IMG/VR virus record: IMGVR_UViG_3300030503_000315
Coordinates: 62,001 to 126,000 of that record
Reading direction: 5' to 3' (one strand)
Length of the DNA: 64,000 nucleotides
This document shows, piece after piece, positions 1-59,311 of this stretch (its first letter is position 1; each line of letters starts with the position of its first letter). The position numbers and the translations under genes are program-made. A model generated the notes under the pieces. That model did no database searches, had not been told where the DNA came from, and saw nothing but the letters and a program-made list of their open reading frames with translations.

Positions 1-22
1 CTTGTCGGCATTTCAACCTCCA

Positions 23-679
23 TCAACGTCCATATGGATGAAGTAGCTTGAGCTGTTTCTCTCGCTCCTTCACATACTGTTCCGTGGAAATAAATTTGTG
101 ATTCGACCACCCTGTCATGACCTGAACATTGTGTATGGGTACATTCACTATATCCAGGATAACTTCCTGTTGAGAATCTCGGAACTCTAATCCTTCCGAG
201 AAGTATTTTCTTTGATCGTTGAAGTGTTCAATCCAGGCACACCAGGATTTATCTTTCCAAATAGAATCAACATCCAGGATGATGTCGGAATGTTTTGGTT
301 TTATGGTAAGGAGAACTGCACTGGAATCATCTCCTGCGTCACCCATGGAGTTGCTAAAAAAGTAATCACCCATGAATTCGCGAATAACCTTCATGTCCTT
401 TGTCCAGGACGAAGGTTTCTTTGCTCCGACCATCTTGTTCTCAATACACTTCATGAGATTTTTATCAGATAAGGCAATCACTCGATAGAGAGTGCCAGAG
501 TACTGTCTGAATTTTGCTGGCCAGGGTTGCTTTTTGAGTTTCTTGGCTTCACCGGGTAGCGCACTATTTTGCCACTCGCCCAAGGTCTCTACCATATCCT
601 CGGTAGGACCCGCTTCACCTTTCGCCATCATCAGGTGTTGCATCCTGCTTAGACGCGTCGAAGAATTTATTTTAATCAT
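23..679 (-). CDS. Putative ADP-ribosyltransferase (R-S-E class)
   Basis: Motifs in ART order: LYRVI (Arg), SSWT (Ser-x-Thr), QQEVIL (Glu); shares the MIKINS leader with the neighbouring ARTs. Confidence 0.6.
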   Translation of the reverse strand: MIKINSSTRLSRMQHLMMAKGEAGPTEDMVETLGEWQNSALPGEAKKLKKQPWPAKFRQYSGTLYRVIALSDKNLMKCIENKMVGAKKPSSWTKDMKVIREFMGDYFFSNSMGDAGDDSSAVLLTIKPKHSDIILDVDSIWKDKSWCAWIEHFNDQRKYFSEGLEFRDSQQEVILDIVNVPIHNVQVMTGWSNHKFISTEQYVKEREKQLKLLHPYGR

Positions 680-686
680 TTCTACC

Positions 687-1433
687 TCAGCTGCTATACT
701 CGACAGTTATGATACGAGGCTGACCTCGCTTACCTGGTTTAATATCCACTACTTTATACTTAGCATCCTTGTTCAACAGAATCTCATTTTCCGAACGGGT
801 TGCGTGCCCACCTTTCTTGAAAACGGAAAGACTATCGACGGAGATTGCTTTGCTACCCTTCGGCACTTGAATCTTCAGTATCGTTGGATTATCACCACGA
901 GAAAAGTTGTCCGCGGTGTCCTTGTCAGTTGACGTCGATCCATATCCACGATCTTCAAAGGACTCGCCGACTTTCAGATCCTTGAACATATCCATTTCAG
1001 TTGCACCAACACCACGATAGACTTCAAGAGGTTCAGTTGTCTTGGCCTTATCGAATGCTTGTTCAACCAACTTCATTTCCTTTCTATCTGCTGCAGGAAT
1101 ATTCTTCCCCGCACGCAACGCCTTGTTAACCGATTGGTACATCACACCAGTATATTCTTTCAGCGCCTGCACTTCTTTGGGATCAAGTGTAACTGAAGCC
1201 GCTTTGTGTGCTGCTTTACCTTTGGCTACTTTCCCCGCAGGCTGCTCAACTTCAGGACTCGGTACCACTTTGGGTTTTGACTGTGGTTCTGCAACCCCTG
1301 TCTTTCCATACTTACTACGAGGATGTCTCTTTAAGTACTGCTCTTGCTTTTCCTTACTGAGGTTGTCCCACCATCCTGCATCTATCTCGAAGGCAGTAGC
1401 GATCAACCTCCGGACAGAATTGATCTTTATCAT
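687..1433 (-). CDS. VIP2/C3-exoenzyme-like ADP-ribosyltransferase
   Basis: ALKEYTG..Y.SVN..LR helix, EVYRG, GYGSTS and ENEILL motifs; N-terminal WWDNLSKEKQEQYLKRHPRSKY segment and a P/K-rich linker. Confidence 0.9.
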   Translation of the reverse strand: MIKINSVRRLIATAFEIDAGWWDNLSKEKQEQYLKRHPRSKYGKTGVAEPQSKPKVVPSPEVEQPAGKVAKGKAAHKAASVTLDPKEVQALKEYTGVMYQSVNKALRAGKNIPAADRKEMKLVEQAFDKAKTTEPLEVYRGVGATEMDMFKDLKVGESFEDRGYGSTSTDKDTADNFSRGDNPTILKIQVPKGSKAISVDSLSVFKKGGHATRSENEILLNKDAKYKVVDIKPGKRGQPRIITVEYSS

Positions 1434-1435
1434 AG

Positions 1436-2611
1436 CTAGCCCATATGTCGTTCTTGGTGTTCTTCAATCTCACGCTTAGACCAGTCCTCTGAATTGATAT
1501 TCAAAGCCTCACCTTTTGAGTGAACATACTTTGCCTCACCAACCTGGTTGTCTTTGGAGTCGATGAGCTGGACAACCCAACTACGCGCCCCTTTGTCATA
1601 CCAACGTTCGATTTTCCACCCTGCTGGTAGCTTTTTATCTACTGATATAGCAGCTGCCTGTACGGTGTCTTTACATTTCCTCAAAAAGAAACGTAGGGTA
1701 TTCGTTGAAGGCTTATCTTTAAGTAACCAGGTGATCCCTGGATGCAGTGGCTGTGGGAATTCATTTGGTAGAAACCACTTGTATCCTCCCGATTCTTCAT
1801 TGATCTGAGGTTCGAACTCATGAGGAACCAGAGCCACGTAGTTGTAGTAGACGAACGATTTCTTTTGATCGTTGAATGGTGTCAAGGGACGTAGCTTCAT
1901 CGGACCTTGGTAACCTGTCTCTTCTAAAATTTCCCTACGCAACGCCTGGACGATCTCCTCATTGCCATCTATTGATCCACCAAACTGACCATAGGTATTA
2001 GGCATGGCCGATGTCGAGGATCTTAGCTGAAGCAGGATACGTCCGGTGTCTTGAGCGATAATCAGAGCTCCGGTAGCTGCGTGATAACCACGAATACCAG
2101 GCACCCATTTTTCGTCCAGTTTATGTGCTTTGACGGAGTGGCCACCATGTTTTGACTTAAGATATTTTATGGCTGGACCATACTCAGGTGAGTCTAAAAG
2201 ATCATCCTGCTCACCATCCAACACCTCTTTTAGAATAGCTGGGTCATTTTCTATGTACCGCGCGTGCTCGTGCCAAGGCAAGTGTACCGCAATGATGTCC
2301 GAGGGCTTCACTTCGTCCTGAAGAACAAGCGGCTTATCCCAATTCCTCTTGGGTACTTGAAACTCAACAGTAGGGACTTCTCCAGGAGTACCGTAGAATC
2401 CCTTCTCATCCGCATAGATGCCACGAGGACCTTCAATCCCTTTAGCGTGACTCATTTGAACGCCATGCTTAAGAATAGAAGGCACGTTACTTAATTCCGT
2501 TTGATGGTAGAGCCTTACATAACCAGGTTTGATCTTCGAAGTACCTGGAAGTTCCGGAAGAGTATCGTGAGCGGTAGCTTTAAGTCGAAAGACTGAGTTT
2601 ATCTTCATCAC
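1436..2611 (-). CDS. H-Y-class ART-like domain fused to a Nudix hydrolase
   Basis: N-terminal LYHQT..NVPSILKHG...GIY resembles the His-Tyr ART core; intact Nudix box GGSIDGNEEIVQALRREILEETG. Confidence 0.75.
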   Translation of the reverse strand: MMKINSVFRLKATAHDTLPELPGTSKIKPGYVRLYHQTELSNVPSILKHGVQMSHAKGIEGPRGIYADEKGFYGTPGEVPTVEFQVPKRNWDKPLVLQDEVKPSDIIAVHLPWHEHARYIENDPAILKEVLDGEQDDLLDSPEYGPAIKYLKSKHGGHSVKAHKLDEKWVPGIRGYHAATGALIIAQDTGRILLQLRSSTSAMPNTYGQFGGSIDGNEEIVQALRREILEETGYQGPMKLRPLTPFNDQKKSFVYYNYVALVPHEFEPQINEESGGYKWFLPNEFPQPLHPGITWLLKDKPSTNTLRFFLRKCKDTVQAAAISVDKKLPAGWKIERWYDKGARSWVVQLIDSKDNQVGEAKYVHSKGEALNINSEDWSKREIEEHQERHMG

Positions 2612-4294
2612 TCATTCTTCCTTCATCTGATCGAATTTCTCAAGGTAGGCAGGGATTCTAAATCCCAAAGTCTGCCAGTACATGAGCTGTGCAGCGGGAT
2701 CGATGTATGCATTAAGAGCTGTTGTCCCGGTCACCTTGGTTCCTGAAGCTCCATTACGAACGTGGTTCAGAATCTTACCAACAGCTTCAGCCATCTTCTG
2801 GAACACTACCATAGCAGCCTTTTCGTCCTTAGGTGGTTTCTTCTCAAAGACTTCCTGCATAAGCTGTTGGAAGACGTGTGTTCCCTTAGCTGTACGCAGT
2901 TTGTGGACCGTAGTTCCGTTGGGAGCACCCATCGACTTGAACAATGCATTTACCTGTGTTCCAGTAACGCGAATCGGACGACCCGTAGGTTTAACGTAGG
3001 TGAATAGCGGGTCTTTAGCGGTCTTACCTTGTAGCATTTGAATGATTGCTGCAGCCACATACTTCTGGTTTGCATTTGCTTTCAAAATCTTGTGCACGGT
3101 ATTAACACCATCCTTACCTTTGTAGCGAAGGACGATGTTACCACCAGAATCGACCGAGGCATGCTTCACCTGGAGAGTGGATATCCCATATGTCGATTGA
3201 CCACCTGCTGCATTACCCATCGAACCAACACGAGCGGAAAACTCGTAGAGGATTTCCAGTTCAACAGCAGCAACGCAACGGATGTCCTGAGGATTGAATT
3301 TCCGGACCAGGTTGAACCACTTCTTCTGCATCGATTGCAATTTTGGCAACAGATCGGCTACCTTGCTAAACTTCTGCCTTGCCTGCGCCTTCTTGTAATC
3401 CATGGTGTAGAACGGAGCGCTACCTTGACCATCAGATTTGATTGCCAGGAATACGTAATCTGCACCACCGGGCTTGCCATACTTCGGGTTCATCTCAACC
3501 GAGGGGAAAGTGATAACGGAAGGGACGCCGTTAATCAGATGACCATCGTGAGTGTACATCCTAAGCAGATCATCTACCTGCCCAGTGAATCCAAGAGGAA
3601 GCATGTGATCGATACCATTCGCGTGCAGGAATGCCAGGAGCTCTTCGTACGGAACAGTCGAATGACCAGAGTTACGTACATAACTCACTGCTGCGTCTTT
3701 CCAAATCTGATTGTGTTCCCTGCGGTACAACAGATATTGCTTATACGCATCCGGCTTCAGGTCCTTGACCTGTTTTGCTTCATCTAGAGTAAGTGCAGTA
3801 TCGTCACGACCAACCAACTCGTACACAAGTTGTCGTAAGGATTCGCTGGTCTTCCTTTGTGTACCGACCTTTGGTGCCATGCGCTTGGAGATGTACGGGT
3901 TGTTCATCATACCAGCAAATTTCTCAATCTTCTTCAGGGCAATCTCTGAGTCGGTGCGTAGATATGTTATGAGAGCTTTGAGAATTTCCAACTCTCTTGA
4001 GGTATAGCGTTCGTTCGAACGGAATGATTGAAATTCCTGCTTGAGTTCCTCTCCGAGTAGCGCTAGCTGCTCTGCTTTCGAGCGTCCCGTCAACGCGGCA
4101 TTGAATGCATTGCGGAGGGCAGGCAATTCCTTGCCCCATTGGGCAATCACAGGCTTCTGCAGATGCTTGAGTTCTTGCTCGGTTTCTTCGTCCGGCCGGC
4201 GTTCAGCACCGTTGTCCTTGTAGTCTATACTCAAGGTGTAGAGGGCTTCCAGCAAGGAAACAAGCTGTGATGCAGTAACGAGGATGGGGTTCAT
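2612..4294 (-). CDS. DNA topoisomerase IB with long N-terminal extension
   Basis: Catalytic pentad in order: SARVG (R), YKGKDG (K), HKLRT (R), LNH (H), AYIDP (Tyr nucleophile). Confidence 0.88.
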   Translation of the reverse strand: MNPILVTASQLVSLLEALYTLSIDYKDNGAERRPDEETEQELKHLQKPVIAQWGKELPALRNAFNAALTGRSKAEQLALLGEELKQEFQSFRSNERYTSRELEILKALITYLRTDSEIALKKIEKFAGMMNNPYISKRMAPKVGTQRKTSESLRQLVYELVGRDDTALTLDEAKQVKDLKPDAYKQYLLYRREHNQIWKDAAVSYVRNSGHSTVPYEELLAFLHANGIDHMLPLGFTGQVDDLLRMYTHDGHLINGVPSVITFPSVEMNPKYGKPGGADYVFLAIKSDGQGSAPFYTMDYKKAQARQKFSKVADLLPKLQSMQKKWFNLVRKFNPQDIRCVAAVELEILYEFSARVGSMGNAAGGQSTYGISTLQVKHASVDSGGNIVLRYKGKDGVNTVHKILKANANQKYVAAAIIQMLQGKTAKDPLFTYVKPTGRPIRVTGTQVNALFKSMGAPNGTTVHKLRTAKGTHVFQQLMQEVFEKKPPKDEKAAMVVFQKMAEAVGKILNHVRNGASGTKVTGTTALNAYIDPAAQLMYWQTLGFRIPAYLEKFDQMKEE

Positions 4295-4399
4295 ATTGTG
4301 CCTTCTAATTCTGAATGACAGGATTCGATGGCATCAAATTGCATTCGAAACGACGCAGAGATGGAAAAAGACCACCCTTACTGCTGGTGGTCTTTTTGT

Positions 4400-30300: not shown

Positions 30301-33300
30301 CTATTGATTTGTGTGAGGATCTCAAAGAATCTCATTGTCATTCTCCGTGTGCACTTCGGGATCCAGGATGTTGATCTGGTAATCGACCTTCTTGATCTCC
30401 GTAAGGAAGTTACGGTAATCTCCGCCGTACTTGCCTTTCACCTTCACGATCTCGAAAGGCAGACGTCCAAAATGCCAATCGGCAAACTGCGTAAATGTGT
30501 GAGCTGCGATGGGTGCAGGACGATGCTCGTCCGGCATGAATGCAAAACAGTGTTCATATGCATCCCACGCAACCTTCTCAAAAATATTCAGCCCATCGGA
30601 TTTCCAGCACGAGTCATGATTACTGGAATTCACCCAATTCGAAATTTCGACGTCTTCCCGTGGATGCGTTACGGCAACAAAAACCTGATGCCTCTGCGTG
30701 ACCAGAATGTGGATCGTACGTTGGTAGCGTTTGTCCCATTCCTTGTGATGCGTGGAACCATTCTTCTCGTATCCGTAGTTCAGCATGTCGAACGAAATGC
30801 GGAAGTATATTGCATAACAACCATCACGCAACGTCAAGAACTGGTGTCCATCTGCGCCGTTAAGCGCAGTCTTGTTGCGATGCCCGCTAACGATGAAGTG
30901 TTCGGCGAGTTCAGCTACCACGTGCTTCGTTTCGATTTGGTTCATTGCTGTTCCCCTTCGTATTTGACCACCGCCTGCCAACAGGCAAACAAGTCATTTT
31001 GTAGAACATGGAATTTATCCATAGCCCCGGAGGGCCCACCAAGTGGTTGCCAACCTTCTTGAAGAGCAACCATCACAAGTTTTGTAAGCTCTGGGAAATT
31101 GCGTTCCGTGAGAACTTTGTAATCAAAGATTTTCATAACCCACTCTCACAGTTGGAGGGGAGGTTTGACATCCGCCATCATTGCTTCAATTTCTTCGACT
31201 GCAAGTGTACCTCCTTCAATATGAAGGCTGTCAAGAATCTGCGCTGTAGTCAGCGCACGCACCAAGGCTTCTCTGTAACAACGAAAGGATGAGGTGTCAC
31301 AGTGCTCAAAATGTTGCACGCCCCAAAATCCAACTGAAGCCATAGCCGACTTCAGTCTACCTTCTAACATTCTTATAGTTGACGTATCCATCTTAGCTCC
31401 CGTTGAATTCAACTTTGGACCAGAGTTCTTTCATCTTCGCTACGGCGTCGAGTTCGTTCTGCATTCCATCATCCGAATCGAAGATGAACACATCTTTATC
31501 CGCAACGATATCGACATCGGGAATAAAGGTCGGACCTTTGCTCAGGACCGGGTCCTGCATCCAACCTGCTTCGTAGTGACGAAGGGTCCACGCCTGCGAA
31601 AGCATGACCACGTAGACCATGGCGAAGCCAAACTGGTTACTCGTGGTGTTACGTTTGGTAACATACATGAAAGGCATATTCATTGTGAACTCCTAGAAAT
31701 AGAACTTGCCATCAACAAACGCTTTCGGGTGCCCTGCCGGCAAATCATTGCCCAAGACTTCCTCAAGAGTTCGACCCATGTCCTTAACGTAGTTCAGCTG
31801 CTCTGCTTCAATCCATGAAGCTTCGAGTTCCTCATCCAGCGCATCGTCTTCCCCGATTTCGACCGGATCGTCGTCATAGACAGGGTCATGATCGTAATAA
31901 CCCGAGGCTTCGAGCTCTTCCTCGGCGGCGTCATTGCGACGTTTGATACATGCGCCGCAGACGCGATACAGAGGACCATACATTCCTTCGTCGTAGTCGC
32001 GGGCATCGCGCAGATCGGTAGCACCGTTGCTACACCAATCACACGTGCCATGCGCCATCTCTTCCTTGTAGGCAGCTAGTTCGACTTTGTGCTGCTCGTA
32101 GCATTCCAGGCACATATCGTTCAGCTCTGCTCCGAACGAATCCGTCTCTCCCTGCACCCTATGAGTTGCAGGACGCCCCGGGTGCGAGTCACACATTGTG
32201 TCCTTGGGAACTGAATGATGCGCACCGGGCAACGTACGGCAGGGTCCAATAACTTCAGCCATGATTATTTTCCTTGATCTCGTAGCCCGCGTCCAGCAGG
32301 GCTTCTTTGATGAAAGCATTCAGTATGTCAGCTTGACGACTTAACCATTCCGCCTTGGCATCATAGCCCATGCCCTTAGGCATGTCGAGTTTGACTCCGA
32401 TATAGGTGATGCCTTCATCACCGTTAGAGTGACCTTCAATCACCCCAACTCCCAACTTCATCTTTGCCATGTCATGCTCCTTGATCCAGTGGACCGCATC
32501 CACCAACAGCTTCGCGATCTGCATAGGTAGCATGGCGAAGCAAGCGCGCTGCCACTACTATATAGGTACTCCCATCTTCAACTTCGGCGATTGCCCGAGC
32601 ACGTGTTAAGGCAATCACTTCAGTCGTGAAGAGATGACCGAGCCCGTTAACAACTTGAAGTTCATAGATGAACTCTCCGGTTCGAGTTGCATCTGTTCGA
32701 TCTTCTACAACGCACTCGCTGCAAACTCGAACAAATGCGTGCTGGTGTTTTTCACAGAACATATCATGCTCCTTGAGCAATGAACAAATCACAAGTTGCC
32801 CACGCCGTTGCGCAACCAATCAACGCCGAGGACAACACGAAGAAGAATGCAGTGAACCCCGGCTCTTGCTTGAACATCGCTTGAAACTCAAGCCGAACCG
32901 CGTACGAGAACACTGCCATGCAGGGCAGATAAACTGCCACCCAAATCAGAAACAGTTTCACTGTGCCTCCTCACTGCTCGAGGGGCAGAGGGAATACATT
33001 TGCCCCATTCTCGATGATACTGAACAAACCAGCGAGGAGGAACGCAGCAGCCTCGCTGATAATCAAAACAGGGCGATGCAATGTAGGATCGAACTCGCTG
33101 CGGTTCATAAGCAGCATAGTAGCAACATCGACATTCGGAGCTTGCTCCGTGCTTTGGACGAGAATGGTTTCTGTGTTGAGACCGACTGCAAACATGATAT
33201 GCTCCTTGAGCAGAGGTAAAACGATTGATGGGTTTTGTGTTCAGATGCCAGTCAGGAAATCAGCGATCTCCTGCAGCTTGTATTCATCGCTCTGTGCCAT
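27313..33300 (-). other. Large accessory array of about 20 small hypothetical CDS, several predicted membrane or Cys-rich
   Basis: Includes 27313.., 27929.., 28245.., 28411.., 28893.., 29097.., 29669.., 30015.., 30322.., 30942.., 31146.., 31393.., 31693.., 32255.., 32472.., 32764.., 32971..; continuous tiling. Confidence 0.6.
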
Positions 33301-33306
33301 GATGAA

Positions 33307-33452
33307 CTCCGTTTCGTTGGGAGGGCATGAAAAACGATAAATGTGCAAATGTCGCACGCGGCATTTTCCTTGCGGTGCGTCCGCAACACTATTCTATCAG
33401 AAACGCGCTCAACTGTGGTCGGGGTGCTGTGGTGTTGCAGAAAAACAACACC
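33307..33452 (-). promoter_or_regulatory. Class A promoter (TGATAGAAT plus GGTGTTG-N8-CAACACC) and AACGAAACGGAG leader
   Basis: -10 at 33391-33399, palindrome 33431-33452, leader motif 33307-33325. Confidence 0.7.
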
Positions 33453-33484
33453 CCGCGAACCACCTATTTACGTGCATTTGCCAG

Positions 33485-38958: not shown

Positions 38959-39266
38959 TGCTGTTTCCCTTGATTGAGGAGGAACTGCACACCACGATTT
39001 GCTGATGGGTCAGTCTGCTGCACTACAGGAGCCGGCTGCTCAGCTTGAGCTTCTGCTGGCTGTTGAATAACAACAGGCTGTGCGACCTGAGGACTTGGCG
39101 GAGCCGGAGTGTCATCCTCCTGCGTTTGCGCAGGTTGGATGTCCACCACGGGTTCCTGCTTCTTGTCGAATACACCTTTTTGCTTTGCTGCCCAGTATCC
39201 ACCTCCACCAACCACACCAACAATTACCAGAATGAGGAGATTCTTACCTAACCTTGTAGCTGCCAT
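38955..39266 (-). CDS. Single-TM Q/P-rich periplasmic protein
   Basis: MAATRLGKNLLIL anchor identical to that of 36817..37995. Confidence 0.78.
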   Translation of the reverse strand: MAATRLGKNLLILVIVGVVGGGGYWAAKQKGVFDKKQEPVVDIQPAQTQEDDTPAPPSPQVAQPVVIQQPAEAQAEQPAPVVQQTDPSANRGVQFLLNQGKQQ

Positions 39267-39268
39267 GA

Positions 39269-40261
39269 TTAATCCTTCTTCGTCCAGTAATTACCTTTGG
39301 TATATGCAAGTGGTACCGCAGGTTCGAGTTCGACGTCAACAGGTTGAACCTTCAACTGCAGGGTGCGCGAATTCAAATCTTCCAACACCTTCATGCCATC
39401 GTCCGCGCGGATTGCGTCCGTCAGGTTTCTGCCCTTCATGAAGGAGTCGACATCATCCAGGAATGCATCGATCTGACCGAATTGTCGTTCAGTCTCTTCA
39501 GACATGAAACCCATCGCTAGATCACGCATACCTTCGACATCTTCCGATCCACGGAACGCAGATTTCAGAACGCCCATGATACCACCCAGTGCATTCGACG
39601 CCTTGTACTTGCGGACGATAACGTCGATCTTGTAGTCGATGCTATCATTCGTTGCCTTCAATGCATCAAGCACTTCCTTCAGCTTTGCATCCAAAACTTT
39701 AACCTGATCCGCGCCAGGTTGCAATTCCTTAATTGCACCGATTGCTTCAGCCAATTGCATCGCGCGTCCACGAATCTCCGCAGTCTCACCATTATGAGAT
39801 TGCAGGTAATTCGCTTCCTTCTGCAAGCGTGTCGCGTCTGCCTGGAAACCAGCGATGGTCGATTCGATCAATGCTTGCTGTTCCTTCACCTTACCACGAG
39901 CATCACTTGCAACCTGAAGCTTTTGTCTTGCTGCCTTCTGTCGATCCCGTGCCAACCACGCAGGATCATATTGAATGAACGCGTAGGTCAAAGCCCACAT
40001 AGCCCGCTTGTAGACAAACCACACCAGCTTCGTCAGCCTACCATCAAGAATGATACCAACCAATGCAAGCAATATCAAACCAAGGATGATAGCGTAGATC
40101 GTATTCGCAAACAGAGTTATGATGAATGGAAGAATTTTGAAAAGACCCCATCCACCCAGACCCAAGATACCCAAGCCGAAAAACAATCCGGTTGTACCTT
40201 CCTTCGTGTTCCAAAAGGAAGGTCGCTTGAACCCCGTTGGGGTAGTGAGATCATTTGGCAT
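39269..40261 (-). CDS. Inner-membrane protein with a long helical coiled-coil (PspA-like architecture)
   Basis: SFWNTKEGTTG followed by 2-3 hydrophobic helices and about 220 aa of amphipathic helices. Confidence 0.7.
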   Translation of the reverse strand: MPNDLTTPTGFKRPSFWNTKEGTTGLFFGLGILGLGGWGLFKILPFIITLFANTIYAIILGLILLALVGIILDGRLTKLVWFVYKRAMWALTYAFIQYDPAWLARDRQKAARQKLQVASDARGKVKEQQALIESTIAGFQADATRLQKEANYLQSHNGETAEIRGRAMQLAEAIGAIKELQPGADQVKVLDAKLKEVLDALKATNDSIDYKIDVIVRKYKASNALGGIMGVLKSAFRGSEDVEGMRDLAMGFMSEETERQFGQIDAFLDDVDSFMKGRNLTDAIRADDGMKVLEDLNSRTLQLKVQPVDVELEPAVPLAYTKGNYWTKKD

Positions 40262-40886
40262 TTGTAGCTCCCAGGTACATTTGAACCTTCTTCGAAATAT
40301 CGCTATACTTTGTGCTAAGGTTGGTCACGATACTTTTGAAGTCGATGTCGGCCTTACTCAGGTCGACCGTCTTCTGTTGCACCGAAGTCACCAGAGTCAT
40401 CTTGTCTTGCGTTGCTGTGCTCAACTCTTGTGTCAGTTGTTGAATCTTTTGCTCAGCAACGTCTACCTGAGCTTTCGTCTTCTCGAGATCATCTTTCGAG
40501 GCGGTGACGAACTCAGCTTCGAAACGTTGTGCGGCTTGTGCAAGAACGATGCCATGCGATTCAACTGCGGTAATCAGTTCTTCTGGTGTGGCTTCAATGA
40601 TCGCTTGCACCGTACGGAACTTCGTCGGCTCATCCATGCCGGGGACGTTCTTCAACTTTTCCAACTGCTCTTCGAACTTGTTAAAAACAGCGTACGCAGC
40701 GCTGCCTCTGATGTCGTGCTCGATGTCCGCGGTGATCGTCGGTACATCAAGTACACCCTGTGCTGCCAACGTAGTTCCTGTTCCTGCAGGAATGGATACG
40801 GGAGTAACCGCTTTAGTAACCGGTGCAGGTTTTGCTACCGGTTTCTTGTCGTCTTCAACCAGTCCAAGTTTCTTAAGAAAATCCAT
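40251..40886 (-). CDS. Coiled-coil protein, first gene of the envelope operon
   Basis: MDFLKKLGL amphipathic N-terminus, P/A/K linker, long heptad C-terminus. Confidence 0.72.
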   Translation of the reverse strand: MDFLKKLGLVEDDKKPVAKPAPVTKAVTPVSIPAGTGTTLAAQGVLDVPTITADIEHDIRGSAAYAVFNKFEEQLEKLKNVPGMDEPTKFRTVQAIIEATPEELITAVESHGIVLAQAAQRFEAEFVTASKDDLEKTKAQVDVAEQKIQQLTQELSTATQDKMTLVTSVQQKTVDLSKADIDFKSIVTNLSTKYSDISKKVQMYLGATNAK

Positions 40887-40989: not shown

Positions 40990-41630
40990 TTACTTCCTCA
41001 ACTTGTTCTTCACCGACATCAAAGCTTGATGCCAGGCGACGCAGGCATTTATTCCTCGTTCGAATGCTTGCGGTGCCTCTGCAGAATCTTGCTCTGTGAA
41101 CCACGGAAGTTCCATTGTTCCCTGCCGACCATTCTTTGCAACTACATGGTACAGACGTGGGATAACATACTTGGCAGGTAGTACGTACACCGCACGCATG
41201 CCGAACGTGTAAATCTTACCTTCAATGTTCGCTTCGACGCTGAAGTCCATGCCAAAACGCGACACCTCGCCGGTTACGATCGTACCTTCCATCTCACATT
41301 CAAACTTATGCTTGTCATCCCACAGCGTACTCATGTTGGTAACTTCCAATCGATTCGCCACGTGGGCATCAACAACTTGAACTCTTTTTCGGAAAATGGT
41401 TTGCAGGCGATGCCTAGTTCAAACCAGCGATGTAACTTGCTTGCCATTTTACGACGGAACATGGAATGGTGATTTCTACAACGTTGCAACTCAAACACAG
41501 TTATGACTTCATCCATAGTGCAAGACTTTACAACCTGTTTGTATTGCTTGAAGCTCATGTTGAATCTCGATGCGAATTCCTCTTGCTGCTTCTCGAGATC
41601 CGTCACGTCACGTTCTAACACCGTATCCAT
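40990..41630 (-). other. Two hypothetical CDS (40990..~41334, 41331..41630)
   Basis: Tiled ORFs. Confidence 0.6.
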
Positions 41631-41651
41631 GTTCCGCCCTCTCTACATTAA

Positions 41652-42620
41652 CTATGCGTATGCAGAAGGCTCAAGGTAACTTCTAAGCTTGCTAAACACC
41701 TTGGCGACCTGCACGTCAGTGAAGCCGAAGAACTTTGTTGCTCGATCCAAATATCGATCATACGACATCGAATCGATTGCCAGACTGTTGTCACGTTTCA
41801 GATGCTCCGAGAATTCAACATCATGGCGCCCTGCGCAACACAGAATGAATCTTTGTAGTTCAGGCTGCATCCTCTCTCCAACCTTCACCAGAGTTTCCAT
41901 GTGATCCTTGATATGGCTCAAGTATTCACATGGGGCTGTAACCCTGTTGACATGCAGACTGATATCTTCATGCACTGCTTGGTGTTGCCCATGCTCGTCC
42001 ACATACAACCTATTGCGAACACCATTGACATTCTGCGTTATCATGGTCATCGCTGCATGGTGAATCGTCGTCTTCGCTACGTTTGTCATATGAAGCAATG
42101 ACTTGAACCTCGGGTAGTGCATGTATAGTGCACGAACTGCACGTGCCCTCAACTCTGCATCCAAATCTTCCCTGTTCTCCCCGTAGGAACGACACAAGAA
42201 AATCAACTTCCTTGAAATAAGTTTACCGATGTGCTGGTTCATGTGGTTGCAATGAACCGTATCTTCCACCAACTGATCGAAATCTTCCAACGAGTATGCT
42301 TCGTAATCAAGTGACAGGTGATTGAGATTCAGTCTCCGAAGAAACGAAGCGTCAACCGGATCAACCTCATAGTCTACGGCCCTCGGTTTGGCTATCATAC
42401 CGAATCGGTATTTGTGATAAGCCCAGGCATACAACTTGTAGTTCTTGAGGATCTTCCCTTGCGAACGTGACAGACCAATCAGCCTGTCAGAGAGCTCCTT
42501 GTTGTCGAGCAACTTCTTCATGCGGCGTTGATCGATGCGGTGAAACAGATAGGCGTAGTATGCTCCGCCGACACTGCCCATCTCTGAACGTTTGATTCCA
42601 AACTCTTCGTGAAGTAACAT
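41652..42620 (-). CDS. Hypothetical protein with a possible divergent sigma-70 region-2-like segment
   Basis: YGENREDLDAELRARAVRALYMHYPRF...NVAKTTIHHAAMTMI resembles the sigma2 helix pattern; not confirmed. Confidence 0.35.
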   Translation of the reverse strand: MLLHEEFGIKRSEMGSVGGAYYAYLFHRIDQRRMKKLLDNKELSDRLIGLSRSQGKILKNYKLYAWAYHKYRFGMIAKPRAVDYEVDPVDASFLRRLNLNHLSLDYEAYSLEDFDQLVEDTVHCNHMNQHIGKLISRKLIFLCRSYGENREDLDAELRARAVRALYMHYPRFKSLLHMTNVAKTTIHHAAMTMITQNVNGVRNRLYVDEHGQHQAVHEDISLHVNRVTAPCEYLSHIKDHMETLVKVGERMQPELQRFILCCAGRHDVEFSEHLKRDNSLAIDSMSYDRYLDRATKFFGFTDVQVAKVFSKLRSYLEPSAYA

Positions 42621-48785: not shown

Positions 48786-49235
48786 CTAATGCTTCAGTAT
48801 TTGAAATCCCTGGCTAACTTTGCCTATGTTTTCTTCAATCACAGCCATTGAGAACTCTTTATAGAAAAAATCCATCCGAACTTCGGCCTGGTCTTCAGAT
48901 ATAGATCTTGGTTTCAGCTCATCATTCACCTGAATAACGAACTCCATAGTTTTCTGAGTAGACCCACTACGATGCAACTCTTCCAGAAGAAATTTGTAAA
49001 TATCCTCCCACACCAATTTCTTGCCTTTAATCTTTGAGGAGAAGACTCTCATTCTATTGAACCAGGTTAAAATCTCTTTCTCCCACCCTCTGGTGTAAGT
49101 TGAGGTAGGGAACAACATTATCTTGAACGCATGAGTGTGCACCTGATCACCCAACTCCTGAATCTTGTTCTTGGCAAACTTTCGGTCGTATGCCATCGCG
49201 GTCAGCTTCAACCGCTTTACTGAATTCGTTTTCAT
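48786..49235 (-). CDS. Hypothetical protein (DUF29-like pattern) carrying the KxNSVxRLxxTA leader
   Basis: MKTNSVKRLKLTA N-terminus; HAFKI...RGWEKEI. Confidence 0.55.
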   Translation of the reverse strand: MKTNSVKRLKLTAMAYDRKFAKNKIQELGDQVHTHAFKIMLFPTSTYTRGWEKEILTWFNRMRVFSSKIKGKKLVWEDIYKFLLEELHRSGSTQKTMEFVIQVNDELKPRSISEDQAEVRMDFFYKEFSMAVIEENIGKVSQGFQILKH

Positions 49236-49578: not shown

Positions 49579-50444
49579 TTAGCTCGCAGATTTGTCAATC
49601 AACCAAACATCGTACGCGTTGGTGAGTGGATCGAATCTGATTCTAAGAAGACCAAAAGTTTTCACAGGCCATTCCCAGACTGCGTAGTGACCCTTCCACT
49701 TCACCTTTGTTGGAACTTTTTCCCGCAAGTTGATGATTGTGGGCCTGCAATGTTTTGCAGTGAACTGAACTTTGCCACCGGCATTTGTCCAATGCCCTCC
49801 GACTTTGAGTCCGAGCTCATCTAACAGTTTTCGCGCCTTTTCAATGTCTGCTTTCATGCTCTCTCCGTTCCGTTGGAAGTTGTCCTAAATCAGAATGCGT
49901 CGTTCACGCCGTTGTAACGCGGAGTGCGAGTCTTGCGCGCCACAGTCTTCTTTGCTACCGGCTTCAGTGTCTTCTTAACCGCTACAGTTTTCGTCACAGC
50001 TTTCTTTGCGGGTGCAGGCTTGCCCCCGATTTTGCCACCAGCCTTCAGTGCGGTAACAACGAGGTCCATCGTGAACTTCATACGACGGCCGCTTTCGTCT
50101 GTAGCAACGAACGGGAATTTCGGGCGGCTGGGGTATAGACCGATCAGTGTGAATGTTTCCCCACGATACTCAAACGTGTCGTTCAAGCACGAAGCAGGAA
50201 CGCCAAACGAGTCAGAGTATCTTTTGAAATCCGCAGCCTCGGCAGATTCGACCGATCCGTCAGGGTTCACAACTGAAACGTTGATTTTCAGATCAACGCT
50301 CGTTGCTGTTTTCATTGTTCCACCGGCTGGTCGAAAAGCCACGCCATATTTGCGCCCGAGCGCTTCGAGCTCAGCGATCATTGCGTCGGAAAGGACGCGG
50401 CAGGCTGTACGGTCGAGGGTCTTGATTGCTGTTGTCTTTGCCAT
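49579..50444 (-). other. Two hypothetical CDS (49579..49857; 49890..50444 with a K/A-rich tail)
   Basis: ORFs preceded by AACG(A/G)AACGGAG leaders. Confidence 0.68.
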
Positions 50445-50451
50445 GATGAAA

Positions 50452-50596
50452 CTCCGTTTCGTTGGGAGGGTGTGAAAACGCGAACAACGCGCGAAAACCG
50501 AAGTGCGTTTTCGCTACGTGCCCATGCCATACTATTGTAACATTTCTGTCAGGTTTCGTGGAACATTCGAAAACAGTTGTAGGATAAAAACAACAC
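50452..50596 (-). promoter_or_regulatory. Class A promoter plus AACGAAACGGAG leader
   Basis: ATGTTACAAT at 50534-50543; palindrome variant with an 11-nt spacer at 50575-50596; leader 50452-50470. Confidence 0.68.
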
Positions 50597-50620
50597 CCGA
50601 AAACCACTGTGTGGGCAGTA

Positions 50621-50923
50621 CTATCTCTGCTCCAGGCGCTTACTCAATCGAATGTATACCGTCGCGTACAAACCAGTAGGATCGCAGCCGGACGCGCGGT
50701 TCGCAAGCGCAACATTGTCGATGCCGTTCGCAACGAACACCCCATAGTAGTACGCGACCTTCAACACCTTTCGATATCCATCCACGAGAACGTACTCACC
50801 AACGCGTGGGATTGCCAGAGCGTCCTGGATTGTGATCGTTGCTATACCACCGAGCTTATCGCTCATCGGAATTTCGTAGTCTATCTGCATGTCACACCAC
50901 GGTGAGTTCCTGATTATCTTCAC
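50621..50923 (-). CDS. Hypothetical protein
   Basis: Coupled to the topoisomerase A-subunit stop. Confidence 0.5.
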   Translation of the reverse strand: MKIIRNSPWCDMQIDYEIPMSDKLGGIATITIQDALAIPRVGEYVLVDGYRKVLKVAYYYGVFVANGIDNVALANRASGCDPTGLYATVYIRLSKRLEQR

Positions 50924-55075: not shown

Positions 55076-56337
55076 TCACTCGGCAGAGTTTTCCTCATTA
55101 TACGGATCGAGATTGGGTACATTCATCAATGCATGTACAAACGGAAGGACATTCGAAAGCTCGGTGATATTGCACTTGGCAGAATGATACGGAGACCACG
55201 AACCTCCTTTGGACAACTCAAGGAGGAAGTGTACGTATCCAGGTTCTATGTACTTGGGTGGGCGCTCCATGCCGGGAGCTGACTTGCCATACACTACTTT
55301 ACCTTTCGGATTATCGAATGTCAACGAGATCCGAATACGCCCCAGCTTCCACTGCACCTTAGGCAACACCTGTTCGTCAGCTTCGAGATTTATGATAGGC
55401 ATCTTGTTGCTATCGAACTTGAAGTCGACGTGAAACTTAATCCGCTTACCCGACGCAGATTCCGAGTACTGTGGAGTGTACGCGAATCCCCAACGAGAGA
55501 AGAAGTTGTGCAGGAGCTGCTCCAGCTTCGGCATAGCTTCCTTCGCGGCCTTGATCTTTTCGGGATCTGTAGCTAGGAATGTCATCTCAGAATTAGAGAT
55601 CAGACACTTGCCATACTTCTTCTTCCACGTCGCGGCTAACATCTCCACAAACGGGTCCATCAATTCTTCCTCGAAAGGAACTTCCTTCCCTACAATACCA
55701 TGAGACTTTGTGATTAGTCTCAAGGTAGGGATAAACGTGTGATGGATTCGTAGAAGTGGAACTCCCAGCTTCTTCAACGTCTTGTACGTCTCGAAGTCAA
55801 CCGGGAAGTACCACTGCTTGATACGCGTCAAACGAATCTCATTGGGATCGAGATTCGACTTGACTTCCTCAGGCTCTGGTGGTGGGGCCGGGATCACTTC
55901 TACCACTTCCTTGCCATCTTCAACTTTCAACTCTGCTTGATTTACTACAGGCAACTTCAACCTCTTCTTGATTGAAGTCTTTGATGCGGGTTTCGTTTCC
56001 GCTTTTGCCTTCATTGGTCGACACCTCTGTCTTTGGATTCAAGGTAGTAGTAAAAGCGCTCGATGAACGCCGGGCTTTGCTTATTAACAAGTTGTAGCAC
56101 ATTCGCTTCAGCTACAGGGTTTCTGGAATTTCTGGCTGCCATCACCTGCTTGGCATATTTCCTTGCGCGGCCGACAACAATGATCTGAACTTCGCCCGCC
56201 GGGCAATCCTCGTTCCCTTTCGAGAAATGACATTTCGCATACTTCTTGGGTTCATCGGGGTCCAGGTGGCCGCACTTTTTGCACAGCGGGCTGTAAACCT
56301 CGAGATAGTCCTTGTTATCCACTTTACCACCTCTCAC
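55076..56337 (-). other. Two hypothetical CDS (55076..56014; 56011..~56320 with Cys/His motifs)
   Basis: Tiled ORFs upstream of the topoisomerase genes. Confidence 0.65.
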
Positions 56338-56355
56338 ATCTCGAAAATGACAGGA

Positions 56356-56387
56356 AGGCTGACGCCCTCATTAGAGAACGTCAGCCT
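56356..56387 (-). terminator. Probable terminator
   Basis: AGGCTGACG/CGTCAGCCT stem extended by G-U pairs, TAAT loop, 30 nt after the poly-Glu gene. Confidence 0.55.
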
Positions 56388-56417
56388 GGCTGATTACTAC
56401 TTTTTCACTTCAGGTGA

Positions 56418-57185
56418 TCAGAAGTTGTCGAGGTCTTCCTCTTCTTCTTCCTCTTCTTCCTCTTCTTCCTCTTCTTCCTCTTCTTCCTCTTCTTCCTCTT
56501 CTTCCTCTTCTTCCTCTTCTTCCTCTTCTTCCTCTTCTTCCTCTTCTTCCTCTTCTTCTTCCTCTTCTTCTTCCTCTTCTTCCTCTTCTTCCTCTTCTTC
56601 CTCTTCTTCCTCTTCTTCTTCCTCTTCTTCCTCTTCCTCTTCTTCCTCTTCTTCGTCAGCCACCGGTGCTGCTGCGACGCCGCCCGAGGTCACGAAGATG
56701 TACGAAGGATCCGAGGCGATGACATTACCCGACTCTTCGGTCACGTACACCGTCTGGTTGTTGCGCTCTTCGATGCCGGTGATGGTACCCAGAAGTTCAA
56801 GAGTTTCATAAACAATGACGTTACCGACCACAGCCTTGACACGAGTCCGTGGGATAATCACGTCGCCCACGCCATAGTACGTTGTAGCTGTCGGCTTCTT
56901 AGCCGCCTCAACACGGGATTGAACCTTGAGGAAAACCTGCTGACCAACAGTCGAGGCAACAGCTGCAGCAACCTTCGTCTTCTTCACGACCTTTTCCGGT
57001 GCAGCCTTCTTTGCTACAGTCTTCTTAGCAGCAACCTTTTTAGCTACGACCTTCTTCGCAGCAACCTTCTTGGCAGGAACTTTCTTTGCTACAGTCTTCT
57101 TAGCAGCAACCTTCTTCACTGCAGCCTTCGCTTTCGTGCCGGCCACCGTCTTTGCTGCTTTCTTTGCTTTCGTACCAATTGCCAT
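56418..57185 (-). CDS. H1-like basic N-terminus, small globular core and a 73-residue poly-Glu tail
   Basis: KKVAAKK repeats in about aa 1-75; aa 178-250 are all Glu. Confidence 0.82.
   Translation of the reverse strand: MAIGTKAKKAAKTVAGTKAKAAVKKVAAKKTVAKKVPAKKVAAKKVVAKKVAAKKTVAKKAAPEKVVKKTKVAAAVASTVGQQVFLKVQSRVEAAKKPTATTYYGVGDVIIPRTRVKAVVGNVIVYETLELLGTITGIEERNNQTVYVTEESGNVIASDPSYIFVTSGGVAAAPVADEEEEEEEEEEEEEEEEEEEEEEEEEEEEEEEEEEEEEEEEEEEEEEEEEEEEEEEEEEEEEEEEEEEEEEEEEDLDNF
56436..56654. repeat. GAA/GAG trinucleotide tract (mostly 9-bp GAAGAGGAA units on the minus strand), 219 nt
   Basis: Read directly from the sequence. Confidence 0.97.
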
Positions 57186-57265
57186 GGTGATATACTCTCT
57201 AGAGATTTGATAAGAACCGATCCGCGTTGCCCGGTGCGGTCGAACCCGGTTTGCTTCTTCCTACA

Positions 57266-57274
57266 TATTTACTA
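57266..57274 (-). promoter_or_regulatory. Class B motif TAGTAAATA
   Basis: About 80 nt upstream of the poly-Glu gene, followed by hairpins. Confidence 0.6.
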
Positions 57275-57777
57275 TCTGAGACGATTCGAAACTTCGTTTA
57301 CCCTCACCGAAATTCCTGCTTTGAACAATCTGTATTCGATACCATCGCATTCTATCCAGGTATGAGCAAGATTCAATGCCATTTTCCGTTGAGCACTTTG
57401 GATCTCAGCAGATTCTCCTGGGAGAGCGAACGCTTCGATACAAGCTTCAACAAATTGCTCTCGTATAGATGCCATCATGCGAATCCATCGCGTGGATTGT
57501 TGTTGTACAATCTGAGCGCCTCCTCGTATCCAGCCTTCCGAGCTAGCTTGTAAATCAGAAACTCGAAGCCGTTGTTCTTGATTATGTACTCAGCCAACGC
57601 TTCAGGTGTCAGGTTGATTGATACCGCGACCGAAACCATTTCAGGGTCCTGCTCGAATGCATCCTTGACTGCTCTGGTGAACTCTTCCTCAATCGTCATG
57701 CTCGTACCTCCTTCGTGAAAGGCTGAACGGGACGGTCGGTTTTCAGCCGCAGTCCCGCGAGGATCGGACGTTATCAT
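57272..57777 (-). other. Two small hypothetical CDS (57272..57478, 57475..~57700)
   Basis: ORFs downstream of a class A element. Confidence 0.55.
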
Positions 57778-57821
57778 ACTTTTGCGCTGGCGTCAAAACT
57801 CGGTGTTGTTTTTACGCAACA
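57773..57821 (-). promoter_or_regulatory. Class A-like element: TATGAT -10 plus inverted TGTTG-N8-CAACA palindrome
   Basis: Palindrome at 57804-57821 with the A/T tract flipped relative to the other copies. Confidence 0.55.
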
Positions 57822-57822
57822 G

Positions 57823-58608
57823 TCACTCGTCCGAGTCTTCAGCCTTCTTGTTTGCACCACGCGTGCGCTTCGGCGGAAGCAGAACATCCTTGAACGCTGC
57901 CGACATGAATCTCCGTGCTTTGACGAATGCCTTGTAGACCGGATCCACTTTGTCGAGCGCCTTCAACTTCTTGACCGAGTTGACGACAACAACCTGAGAC
58001 ACCGCCTTGGTCCCTACTGTGATCGAATTGTCTGCAGCCTTCTTACCGATGCGGAACAGGATGCGAAACGTCGTGTTCGGGGTGAGACGAAACGCTGCGC
58101 CGAATGCTGCCTTCTCTTTTGCTTCACCTTCCTTGTTCTTGAACTTGACCTTGGCACAACGCTCCTTGATCGATGCCGGGTAGAACTTGAGGGCGTTCGT
58201 CTTGAACGTCACCTGAGCCAGACGAGCCTGCAGACCAACCAGCGTCTTTGTGTCATAAGCCGAGATGTCGAACTTCTTCTTATCCTCTGCCTGTGGGTCA
58301 TAGCGACCGACGTAGCGAATGGCTCGAATCTGATTCCCCAGCAGGCCATCCTTTTCGGTACGTACCGTAACTTCGAGGAAGAAGGGCTTGAAGTCTGAAG
58401 GTGCATCGAACAGGAATGTTCCCGGCTTAGCCTTCGCTTTCGTCTTCTTCGCGGCTCCGCCCTTGGCACGTGCCAGTCGCGCTTTCTCCAGCGGAGTCAA
58501 CACTTTGCCTTTCGGTGCGACCTTCTTGCTGCTCGAAGTCACCGACTTCCCACTGGCTGTTTTCTTCGCCACTGTTTTCTTTGTTGCTACTTTCTTGGCT
58601 GTTGCCAT
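57823..58608 (-). CDS. Highly basic protein with an H1-like N-terminus
   Basis: MATAKKVATKKTVAKK...; K/R-rich globular remainder. Confidence 0.75.
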   Translation of the reverse strand: MATAKKVATKKTVAKKTASGKSVTSSSKKVAPKGKVLTPLEKARLARAKGGAAKKTKAKAKPGTFLFDAPSDFKPFFLEVTVRTEKDGLLGNQIRAIRYVGRYDPQAEDKKKFDISAYDTKTLVGLQARLAQVTFKTNALKFYPASIKERCAKVKFKNKEGEAKEKAAFGAAFRLTPNTTFRILFRIGKKAADNSITVGTKAVSQVVVVNSVKKLKALDKVDPVYKAFVKARRFMSAAFKDVLLPPKRTRGANKKAEDSDE

Positions 58609-59311
58609 GATGTTGCTCCGTTAGGTGTGATATGGTTAAATGATTCAATTCCGACTGCAAGATGAAAATTAGGGTTTGCGCGTGCTTCTCAGCATACGCA
58701 CGAATGACTTCAGCCGGTTTTCCTTGCTGATGCAGCATTGCGATCTGAAACGTTGGATCATTCCTCAGGCGCTGAAGCGAAACTTGCGGTCGCTGCAACT
58801 CTTGCTTCAAGTACTCGCGACCTTGGTGACATCGCCAAGCCCACTTGCCTGCACCTGTGTTTTTTACTAACATCAGATATGTTTCCTGAAGGAAAGTCAA
58901 ATCCCCCAGACGATACGCTGCTACGACCAACTGGAACAACTCTGAATCACCTCCACGATCCGGGTGAACGAGTGGGGCAACCATCCGATATGCATTTTTT
59001 ACTAGATGCGCCTGAGCATTGTACAGTTGCTCTGTTCCTGCAGTTATATAACCTGCGGAAGTGATCGCGTCCTGTGCAATCGTTGCAGGCGTACCCCGTG
59101 TAGCCAATCGGATTTCTCTACGCAACCGAATGATTGTTTTAGCCTCAGGCATCTCGTCCAGGTACGACGACACAAGCTTCATCGAAGAATTGTAGAGCTT
59201 GTAGTATTGCTGCCTTGCAGCATCGACCTTGCGCGCCAACAAATCGTACTCGTACAGGTGCGCGAGATTGACTGTCAAATTAATCGGTATAAGGTTAGGC
59301 ACTGTACACAC
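58427..59311 (-). CDS. J-domain (DnaJ-like) co-chaperone
   Basis: VKNAYRMVAPLVHPDRGGDSELFQLVVAAY contains the HPD motif. Confidence 0.78.
   Translation of the reverse strand: MCTVPNLIPINLTVNLAHLYEYDLLARKVDAARQQYYKLYNSSMKLVSSYLDEMPEAKTIIRLRREIRLATRGTPATIAQDAITSAGYITAGTEQLYNAQAHLVKNAYRMVAPLVHPDRGGDSELFQLVVAAYRLGDLTFLQETYLMLVKNTGAGKWAWRCHQGREYLKQELQRPQVSLQRLRNDPTFQIAMLHQQGKPAEVIRAYAEKHAQTLIFILQSELNHLTISHLTEQHHGNSQESSNKENSGEENSQWEVGDFEQQEGRTERQSVDSAGESATGTCQGRSREEDESEG

Follow-up and report, generated by a model that had tools for sequence, protein, structure and literature searches.

A putative head-delivered effector of a phiRSL1-like jumbo phage that joins an ADP-ribosyltransferase-like fold to a Nudix hydrolase

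The open reading frame (ORF) at positions 1436-2611, on the minus strand of a 64,000-nucleotide stretch of viral DNA, encodes a 391-residue protein composed of a 15-residue leader, a 145-residue N-terminal domain (N-domain), a Nudix hydrolase domain and a C-terminal domain (C-domain) of about 70 residues (Table 1). The stretch, referred to as the window, comprises bases 62,001-126,000 of the 215,315-bp single-contig IMG/VR virus record IMGVR_UViG_3300030503_000315 (G000), which is estimated to be 91% complete. With somewhat better than an even chance, this protein is a composite effector of a phiRSL1-like jumbo phage that is packaged in the head and injected, a reading for which we infer packaging, trimming and injection as well as the enzymatic activities and their substrates. 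The leader would steer the protein into the assembling head, where it would probably be trimmed by the head maturation protease, and the protein would then enter the host with the injected DNA, allowing two enzymes to act early in infection. The first, an ADP-ribosyltransferase (ART)-fold domain with the signature R-H-[Y/W]-E, would use nicotinamide adenine dinucleotide (NAD+), either to ADP-ribosylate a host macromolecule or simply to consume it. The second would be a Nudix pyrophosphohydrolase of the phiRSL1 ORF109 lineage, with the small C-terminal module alongside. The fusion probably originated when an ancestral gene of leader and Nudix domain took up the ART-like module between these two parts, and it would mainly serve joint packaging and delivery, such that a common target molecule for both enzymes is not required.

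The ORF is one reading frame without interruption (all translations use the standard bacterial code only), and an identical 390-residue product is called on 18 contigs, of which the eight places shown represent eight different metagenome samples. Neither misassembly nor a frameshift can therefore account for the three-domain fusion, which is real.

Table 1. Features of the fusion gene and its surroundings, in window coordinates unless stated otherwise
Feature	Coordinates	Strand	Remarks
Whole ORF	1436..2611	-	391 residues from GTG 2611, 390 residues from ATG 2608; stop codon 1436-1438
Leader, residues 1-15 (M-M-K-I-N-S-x-x-R-L-x-A-T-A-H)	2567..2611	-	putative capsid-targeting peptide or propeptide
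N-domain, residues 16-160	2132..2566	-	predicted ART-fold core ~16-114, helical subdomain ~111-157
Linker 1, residues 158-163 (H-S-V-K-A-H)	2123..2140	-	last residues homologous to leader end in orthologous Nudix genes
Nudix hydrolase domain, residues 164-314	1670..2122	-	PF00293 over residues 176-290
Nudix box, residues 212-234	1910..1978	-	G-x5-E-x7-R-E-U-x-E-E-x-G-U, every consensus position present
Linker 2, residues 315-321 (D-T-V-Q-A-A-A)	1649..1669	-	no significant leader likeness
C-domain, residues 322-391	1439..1648	-	small beta-rich module, shared with P0003
Adjacent gene: leader and Alt/VIP2/C3-type (R-S-E) ART, 248 residues	687..1433	-	PF03496 E 2e-28; VIP2, ExoS and C3 chains in PDB
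Next gene: variant leader and 218-residue domain without family match	23..679	-	leader 15.7 bits on the position-specific scoring matrix (PSSM)
Topoisomerase IB gene, upstream	2612..4294	-	no leader
Head maturation protease gene	G000 41454-42386, outside window	-	phrog_18299, E 6e-83

The N-domain and its family

The initial annotation, which was made from the letters of the window and their translations, had described the N-domain as ART-like because of a few short motifs. These motifs are indeed present and belong to a strongly conserved family, and the fold itself is now borne out by a structural model and structure searches. No match to the N-domain, searched as residues 1-172, was found in Pfam, PHROG or NCBIfam. 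A word search identified stand-alone proteins of about 150 residues that are 48-61% identical to it, and an exhaustive profile search collected 460 clusters at E <= 1e-3, all of them metagenomic, in many of which the domain lies within proteins of 1,000-4,000 residues. Four residues (R33, H36, E83 and W113) are invariant in all 95 aligned sequences, eight more (T38, G50, P62, H110, H114, R118, G133 and D136) are conserved in at least 90% of this alignment, and 89 of the 95 sequences have Y or W at position 66.

The AlphaFold model that uses the 95-sequence alignment (predicted local distance difference test, pLDDT, 93.5; predicted template modeling score, pTM, 0.86) replaced an earlier fold from 16 sequences, which had a pLDDT of 78 that was low over residues 51-80 and gave structural Z scores of at most 5.4. 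The model has the split beta-sheet of the ART superfamily as well as its characteristic first strand (residues 31-37) with His or Arg at the end, followed by a helix (residues 40-49). H36 sits at the end of this strand, local alignments place it on the His of both ART-PolyVal and DarT1, and the invariant E83 is found on the strand formed by residues 81-87. R33, H36, Y66 and E83 are, as judged from strand positions and these alignments, candidate active-site residues.

Comparison of the model with 48,161 PDB representatives by VIA-align yielded ART folds in each of the top 34 rows, 31 of which are named ART, PARP, Tpt1 or DarT. The best match is KptA (Z 7.0, root-mean-square deviation 2.5 A over 70 residues), and TreX (6.5), mouse Tpt1 (6.5) and PARP13 (5.5) come next, with Scabin, CARDS toxin, PltA, PARP16, pertussis S1, DarT (Z 4.5-4.6) and diphtheria toxin further down. 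Foldseek against the whole PDB similarly returned Tpt1, PARP, DarT, cholix toxin and TreX throughout the top 50 (best E 0.045), against BFVD it returned small phage proteins named PARP-domain, ADP-ribosyltransferase, DarT or Tpt1 (best E 2.7e-4), and against the ESM Atlas it returned DarT clusters. Because the matches are uniform in four libraries, and because the N-domain combines an invariant His with an aromatic position 66 and a late-strand Glu that is likewise invariant, an ART fold, probably of the H-Y-E type, is the only reasonable reading of the model.

The resemblance to individual ART families is partial. The first strand-helix motif, R-x-[LF]-[YF]-H-x-T ... N-[LV]-x-S-I-L-x-x-G, is like that of DarT1, with a sequence match of E 0.97. 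With Tpt1/KptA only the NAD lobe aligns (residues 91-180 of 9ld3_A), and the whole protein has no counterpart of the RNA-binding lobe of Tpt1; moreover, the H-H-h clade to which Tpt1 belongs lacks the invariant late-strand Glu of the N-domain. Unlike both Tpt1 and DarT, the N-domain has an extra C-terminal helical subdomain (about residues 111-157) that carries its own conserved motif, H-x-x-W-H-x-x-x-R (H110, W113, H114 and R118). It also differs from the H-Y-D ART-PolyVal family, which it matches only locally (hhalign P 0.014, from a 4-sequence alignment and not counted as evidence of membership), and it is without a Pfam model. As no sequence link is significant, the N-domain therefore stands outside every curated ART family.

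In most of its occurrences the N-domain is part of a large protein. Among 49 IMG/VR loci, about 38 have it in ORFs of 570 to more than 2,100 residues and about nine have it as a stand-alone protein. The partners in the large proteins (LPD38, ART-PolyVal, GP88, Phage_Mu_F, KMPT-N, GNAT, ParB_N and DUF3626) are the vocabulary of the "polyvalent proteins" (PMC5512222), which, as proposed by Iyer et al., combine effectors of this kind in one polypeptide (PMC5512222, PMC9503650). The protein studied here resembles these in joining several unrelated effector domains, at least two, and in sharing its N-domain with bona fide members, but it is unlike them in having only 391 residues and three modules, and in its apparent targeting by a leader instead of a fusion to MuF or portal proteins (PMC5512222). 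Such a portal fusion does occur in the family: a 973-residue ORF (L025:1384-4302, plus strand) consists of a Mu-type portal domain (Portal_Mu), the N-domain and a Zeta_toxin kinase, and looks like a portal protein with two effector domains, so that the N-domain family is physically tied to the capsid. When the N-domain was compared by tblastn with 50,697 deposited phage genomes and 72,556 plasmids, nothing matched; a one-pattern scan of low sensitivity found no relative in prokaryote genome contigs, and the phage's own genome has no paralogue.

The leader and probable delivery through the phage head

The leader (consensus M-x-K-I-N-S-x-x-R-L-x-A-T) is common to about 15 genes, nearly all of which lie in the virion module. 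They include the two genes that follow in the window (687-1433 and 23-679), a dozen just outside it and one at 168 kb. The 13 leaders other than that of the fusion protein were used to build a PSSM of 14 columns, which was scored on 62,710 windows of the proteome, and the N-terminus of the fusion protein reached 34.6 bits and rank 4. Fourteen N-termini scored 25-36 bits and two more 13-16 bits, and unrelated windows begin at about 10 bits and continue downward. The same leader is present on the orthologous Nudix genes phiRSL1 ORF109 and P0003, and in phiRSL1 it also heads ORF120 and ORF133. A short N-terminal peptide that recurs on many proteins of the head module is what is expected of a capsid-targeting propeptide.

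The location of these genes points in the same direction. Small leader-bearing genes lie on either side of the head maturation protease gene, an arrangement reminiscent of the region of T4 gene 21 and the core proteins, and RefSeq uses the name head maturation protease for phiRSL1 ORF132 and for BcepSauron. The assignment came from PHROGs, and the prohead protease families S77, S78 and S49 gave no match in the genome. In phiRSL1, a block of genes on one strand extends from ORF108/109 as far as the genes for the tail sheath and tail tube, and the corresponding block here (G000 ~29-64.6 kb, minus strand) contains the tail sheath, the head-tail connector, a 1,598-residue helicase-like protein and the head maturation protease. 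The fusion gene therefore stands at the head of the virion gene module. A ClpP homologue was also considered as the head protease and was rejected, as it is located among queuosine-like metabolic genes outside the head module, and searches with the 573-residue protein adjoining the protease did not identify it as a capsid protein.

T4 provides the closest precedent. T4 Alt is an ART that is packaged in the head and injected (PMC5512222, PMC9503650), and Alt and the internal proteins of T4 with their capsid-targeting sequence (CTS) share with the present locus a short common N-terminal peptide, a gene location near the prohead protease and, in the 687-1433 product, an R-S-E ART as presumed cargo (PMC5512222, PMC9503650, PMC10052503). 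The leader differs from the T4 CTS in that its sequence is unrelated and occurs on about 15 genes, and its cleavage is suggested by analogy. Unlike T4 Alt, the protein has an H-type ART-fold domain and a Nudix domain in place of an Alt-type ART; together with the 687-1433 product, two different ART-fold enzymes thus appear to follow each other in the operon. From comparative genomics, Iyer et al. proposed that ART, Nudix, Macro and NADAR proteins are often packaged in myovirus heads and injected (PMC5512222, PMC9503650). By analogy with the T4 CTS and with the propeptides of phiKZ and SPN3US (PMC10052503), the leader is probably a head-targeting peptide or propeptide, and packaging, trimming and injection of the protein would follow from this. 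Delivery via the phage head is well supported by context, namely the leader statistics, the nearby head protease and the portal fusion of the N-domain family.

The locus is thus an instance of the known theme of packaged ART and Nudix enzymes, and this combination of them is new. New features are the ART-fold family without a Pfam model, its fusion to a phiRSL1-type Nudix domain and the short shared leader as the apparent means of targeting. To our knowledge, almost none of the head-packaged ARTs and Nudix enzymes of large myoviruses have been tested outside T4 Alt. The locus offers a compact and tractable example of this predicted first-line strategy, with two putative enzymes in 391 residues, and the 460 clusters of the N-domain represent a large ART-fold family for which Pfam has no model. 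In addition, the 15-residue leader points to about 15 proteins of phiRSL1-like phages as candidates for ejection, which makes the idea directly testable in the cultivable phiRSL1, and the leader could act as a tag for loading capsid cargo.

Several further features of leader-bearing and leader-like sequences were observed. The motif W-[WF]-D-x-L-S-x-x-x-Q-x-x-Y-[LIV]-K-x-H-P-x-S-K-Y stands right after the leader in three proteins (687-1433 of the window, G000 56755-57240 on the minus strand and 168042-169058 on the plus strand). Internal leader-like motifs are found in the virion-module proteins encoded at G000 57237-58685 (minus strand), 50010-50813, 55629-56432, 39150-40871 and 32007-33482; a 482-residue protein of the module has a tandem second leader copy at residue 32, and others have single copies at residues 77-213. 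By their sequence these internal motifs may be processing sites. Far from the cluster, the N-terminus of the ORF at window 48786-49235 (minus strand) scores 13.7 bits on the leader PSSM. The 23-679 product, which found nothing in a sequence search of the PDB, has Y-R, S-S-W-T and Q-Q-E motifs, recognized by eye, with a spacing like that of R-S-E ARTs.

The Nudix domain, the linkers and alternative explanations

The Nudix domain matches PF00293 at 54.8 bits against a gathering cut-off of 21.1 (E 1.3e-14) and phrog_1198 at E 2.4e-29, and its Nudix box is intact, as the initial annotation had noted, so that both hallmarks of the superfamily are present. The closest deposited relative is the orthologous phiRSL1 ORF109 (MutT/NUDIX, 56% identity), which resembles the fusion gene in its leader and in its position just after topoisomerase IB, and differs from it in having 167 residues, no ART-like domain and no C-domain. 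The substrate is less clear. The initial annotation had connected the Nudix domain with ADP-ribose or NAD, a connection that the comparisons do not sustain: the best solved relatives are NudI, MTH1, DIPP1 and plant NUDX1, with weak E-values of 2e-4 to 1e-2, all NCBIfam equivalogs fall far below their cut-offs, and no specific kinship with characterized ADP-ribose or NADH pyrophosphatases was found. T4 NudE, according to its T4 record, acts on FAD, diadenosine polyphosphates, ADP-ribose and NADH, and it is like the present domain in being a phage Nudix enzyme, and its gene, nudE, has ipII and ipIII, which encode internal proteins, and the lysozyme gene as neighbors; the 25% identity between the two over 102 residues (E 1e-4) is mostly confined to the Nudix box and thus does not indicate specific membership. 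As far as sequence allows, the Nudix substrate is not inferable, and nothing in these comparisons ties it to ADP-ribose or NAD.

A short third domain, which had also been recognized at the outset, is confirmed as the C-domain and recurs in P0003. Its sole family match is phrog_20571 (E 1.6e-4), and an Atlas structure search placed it near DUF1508/YegP and small hypothetical proteins of viruses, with a template modeling score of about 0.54. A tblastn search of deposited phage records with the C-domain found nothing, nor does the genome contain a paralogue.

The linkers bear on the origin of the fusion. The initial annotation had read both as echoes of the leader. They are found where it placed them, and the end of linker 1 is homologous to the leader end of the orthologues, but the likeness of either linker to the leader on the PSSM is no better than chance. 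Linker 1 ends in A-H and is followed by K-L-D-E-K-W, which is the junction after the leader in P0003 and phiRSL1 ORF109 and is found in P0004 as well. Both P0003 (leader, Nudix and C-domain, 239 residues) and phiRSL1 ORF109 (leader and Nudix) are without the N-domain. P0004, from a 243-kb relative (L006:6001-7254), consists of a kinase-like domain (weak HipA_C, E 0.02), an internal leader-like segment and the Nudix domain; it has no N-terminal leader of its own, and a leader is present on the preceding gene of 200 residues. P0008 and P0009 have other N-terminal domains before the same Nudix, as expected for a cargo module, and stand-alone N-domain proteins stop exactly at the start of linker 1. 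The shared junction and these partner architectures therefore put the ART-like module exactly at the boundary of leader and Nudix domain in an ancestral leader-Nudix gene, and from this homology linker 1 appears to preserve the final residues of a leader. Even the S-V-K-A-H in linker 1 can be read as the leader's S-V-F-R-L-K-A-T-A-H minus two deletions (12/15 nt agree), a post hoc reading that carries little weight. In residues 1-240 of P0008, ART-like-looking L-F-H-G-T and L-V-Y-A-A motifs were noticed, and hhalign of this N-terminus against two ART alignments was not significant.

Several points weigh against the explanation of the protein as a delivered effector with two independent enzymes. 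The structural Z scores of the N-domain do not exceed 7.0 and are individually "middling", and the tool itself warns that values below 8 are common. Profile links of the N-domain to curated ARTs are not significant, be it DarT1 (E 0.97), PARP (E 0.06, on the homologue P0006) or ART-PolyVal (P 0.014). H36, Y66 and E83 were tentatively assigned as catalytic from strand positions and local alignments. Propeptides of phiKZ and SPN3US are cut after A-x-E (PMC10052503), and A-[TS]-E, which is akin to such sites, is present in only about half of the leaders, the fusion protein having A-T-A-H. Lastly, an N-domain and a Nudix domain adjoin directly in three architectures, which cover both possible orders and two Nudix subfamilies, and this suggests from sequence some functional link between the two enzymes.

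This last point leads to the first alternative, a coupled two-step enzyme, in which the ART-like domain would attach ADP-ribose or make a derivative of it and the Nudix domain would cleave the pyrophosphate. The outcome would be a phosphoribosyl mark that resists host ADP-ribose erasers, or else the clearance of ADP-ribose- or NAD-derived by-products and signals. Some Nudix enzymes trim protein-ADP-ribose down to phosphoribose, in accordance with this idea. Phage Nudix domains have moreover been proposed to act on ADP-ribose derivatives (PMC9503650). The N-domain directly adjoins a Nudix domain in three architectures: in the fusion protein it is followed by the RSL1-type Nudix, the L033 ORF has the reverse order and a Nudix domain 44% identical to the present one, and P0078 has, in this order, the N-domain, a Nudix of an unrelated subfamily, ART-PolyVal and GNAT. 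In a further protein, P0093, the N-domain and Nudix are far apart. These four are, however, the only Nudix-containing members among about 200 sampled from the family, and ART-PolyVal is found beside the N-domain more often than any other partner. Genes of the same Nudix lineage also stand alone or are joined to unrelated domains, and the Nudix domain lacks an ADP-ribose pyrophosphatase marker, its best solved relatives being those named above. Because the Nudix lineage also fuses elsewhere and ART-PolyVal is the N-domain's commonest neighbor, co-delivered independent enzymes are ranked above the coupled enzyme, which we regard as unlikely. The writer/eraser coupling put forward in the initial annotation is thus unproven, with the recurring adjacency of the domains as its one argument, and the action against Thoeris that it mentioned is pure speculation.

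The initial annotation also raised the possibility of a polyprotein, in which the head maturation protease would cut the leader and both linkers and thereby free three proteins in the head. The A-H/K-L-D-E-K-W junction at the end of linker 1 is consistent with this, as are the stand-alone N-domain proteins that stop where this linker begins. P0004 keeps a fuller internal leader-like segment, R-R-L-x-x-x-x-x-A-H, before its Nudix domain, several other proteins of the module have internal leader-like motifs, and processing of polyvalent proteins has been proposed (PMC5512222). The linkers themselves, however, are unlike a whole leader: on the PSSM linker 1 scores at best -9.2 bits (rank 1,455 of 62,710) and linker 2 at best -5.1 bits (rank 423), the I-N-S-x-x-R-L core is missing from both, and no leader has anything that corresponds to linker 2. 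The proposal consequently fares poorly and is considered quite improbable.

Still less probable, and the weakest of the explanations, is that the protein is not injected but is a MutT-like housekeeping sanitizer for phage DNA replication, joined to an ART-like fold that is structural or merely binds NAD or ADP-ribose, with the shared N-terminus as a translational, regulatory or localization element unrelated to the capsid: its nearest Nudix relatives among solved structures and NCBIfam are of the deoxynucleoside triphosphate type (NudI, MutT, MTH1; all weak), it is the sole Nudix gene of the genome and a neighbor of topoisomerase IB, and pseudo-ART folds exist, with TASOR and PARP13 among the structural matches, but R33, H36 and E83 never vary among 95 diverse sequences, which argues for a catalytic role, the N-domain family occurs within polyvalent proteins and in fusion with a portal protein, and the leader is shared with an Alt-type ART and clustered around the head protease.

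A more ambitious version of the delivered effector can be formulated, and it is a long shot. Here a recurrent, head-delivered ART-like/Nudix cassette would mark a host protein or nucleic acid with phosphoribosyl instead of ADP-ribosyl groups, following the logic of Legionella SidE, which pairs a mono-ADP-ribosyltransferase with a phosphodiesterase, or it would turn NAD+, or immune signals derived from it, into inert products within seconds of injection. In that case the ART-like domain would found a new, purely metagenomic ART family defined by R-H-[Y/W]-E plus H-x-x-W-H-x-x-x-R.

The source phage and neighboring genes

Judged by sequence kinship, the source is a phiRSL1-like jumbo phage. A near-identity DNA search with window positions 1-4300 gave no match among deposited phages. 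The topoisomerase IB shares 65% identity with its counterpart in Ralstonia phage phiRSL1 (Mieseafarmvirus), and Burkholderia phage BCSR5 and Achromobacter phage Motura are more distant. The genes are tightly packed: the start of the fusion gene overlaps the stop of the topoisomerase IB gene, and its own stop is located 2 nt before the Alt-like ART gene. The order of topoisomerase IB followed by Nudix is kept in phiRSL1 and two metagenomic relatives. In one relative (L005:5111-6004, plus strand) a GIY-YIG (LEM-3-like) homing-endonuclease gene lies between the two.

In phiRSL1 (L001, 52.5-55.6 kb), a NadM-like nicotinamide mononucleotide adenylyltransferase/Nudix gene and a nicotinate phosphoribosyltransferase gene are found just upstream of topoisomerase IB; unlike phiRSL1, the present genome gave no match when searched for a nicotinate phosphoribosyltransferase. 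Outside the window, at G000 185-193 kb on the plus strand, there is a run of QueC-, QueD-, QueE- and FolE-like genes, recognized by eye from their N-termini, and the same region holds the ClpP homologue mentioned above (PF00574, E 9e-30) and a ThyX-like gene. The sequence of the Que/FolE-like run suggests a 7-deazaguanine pathway.

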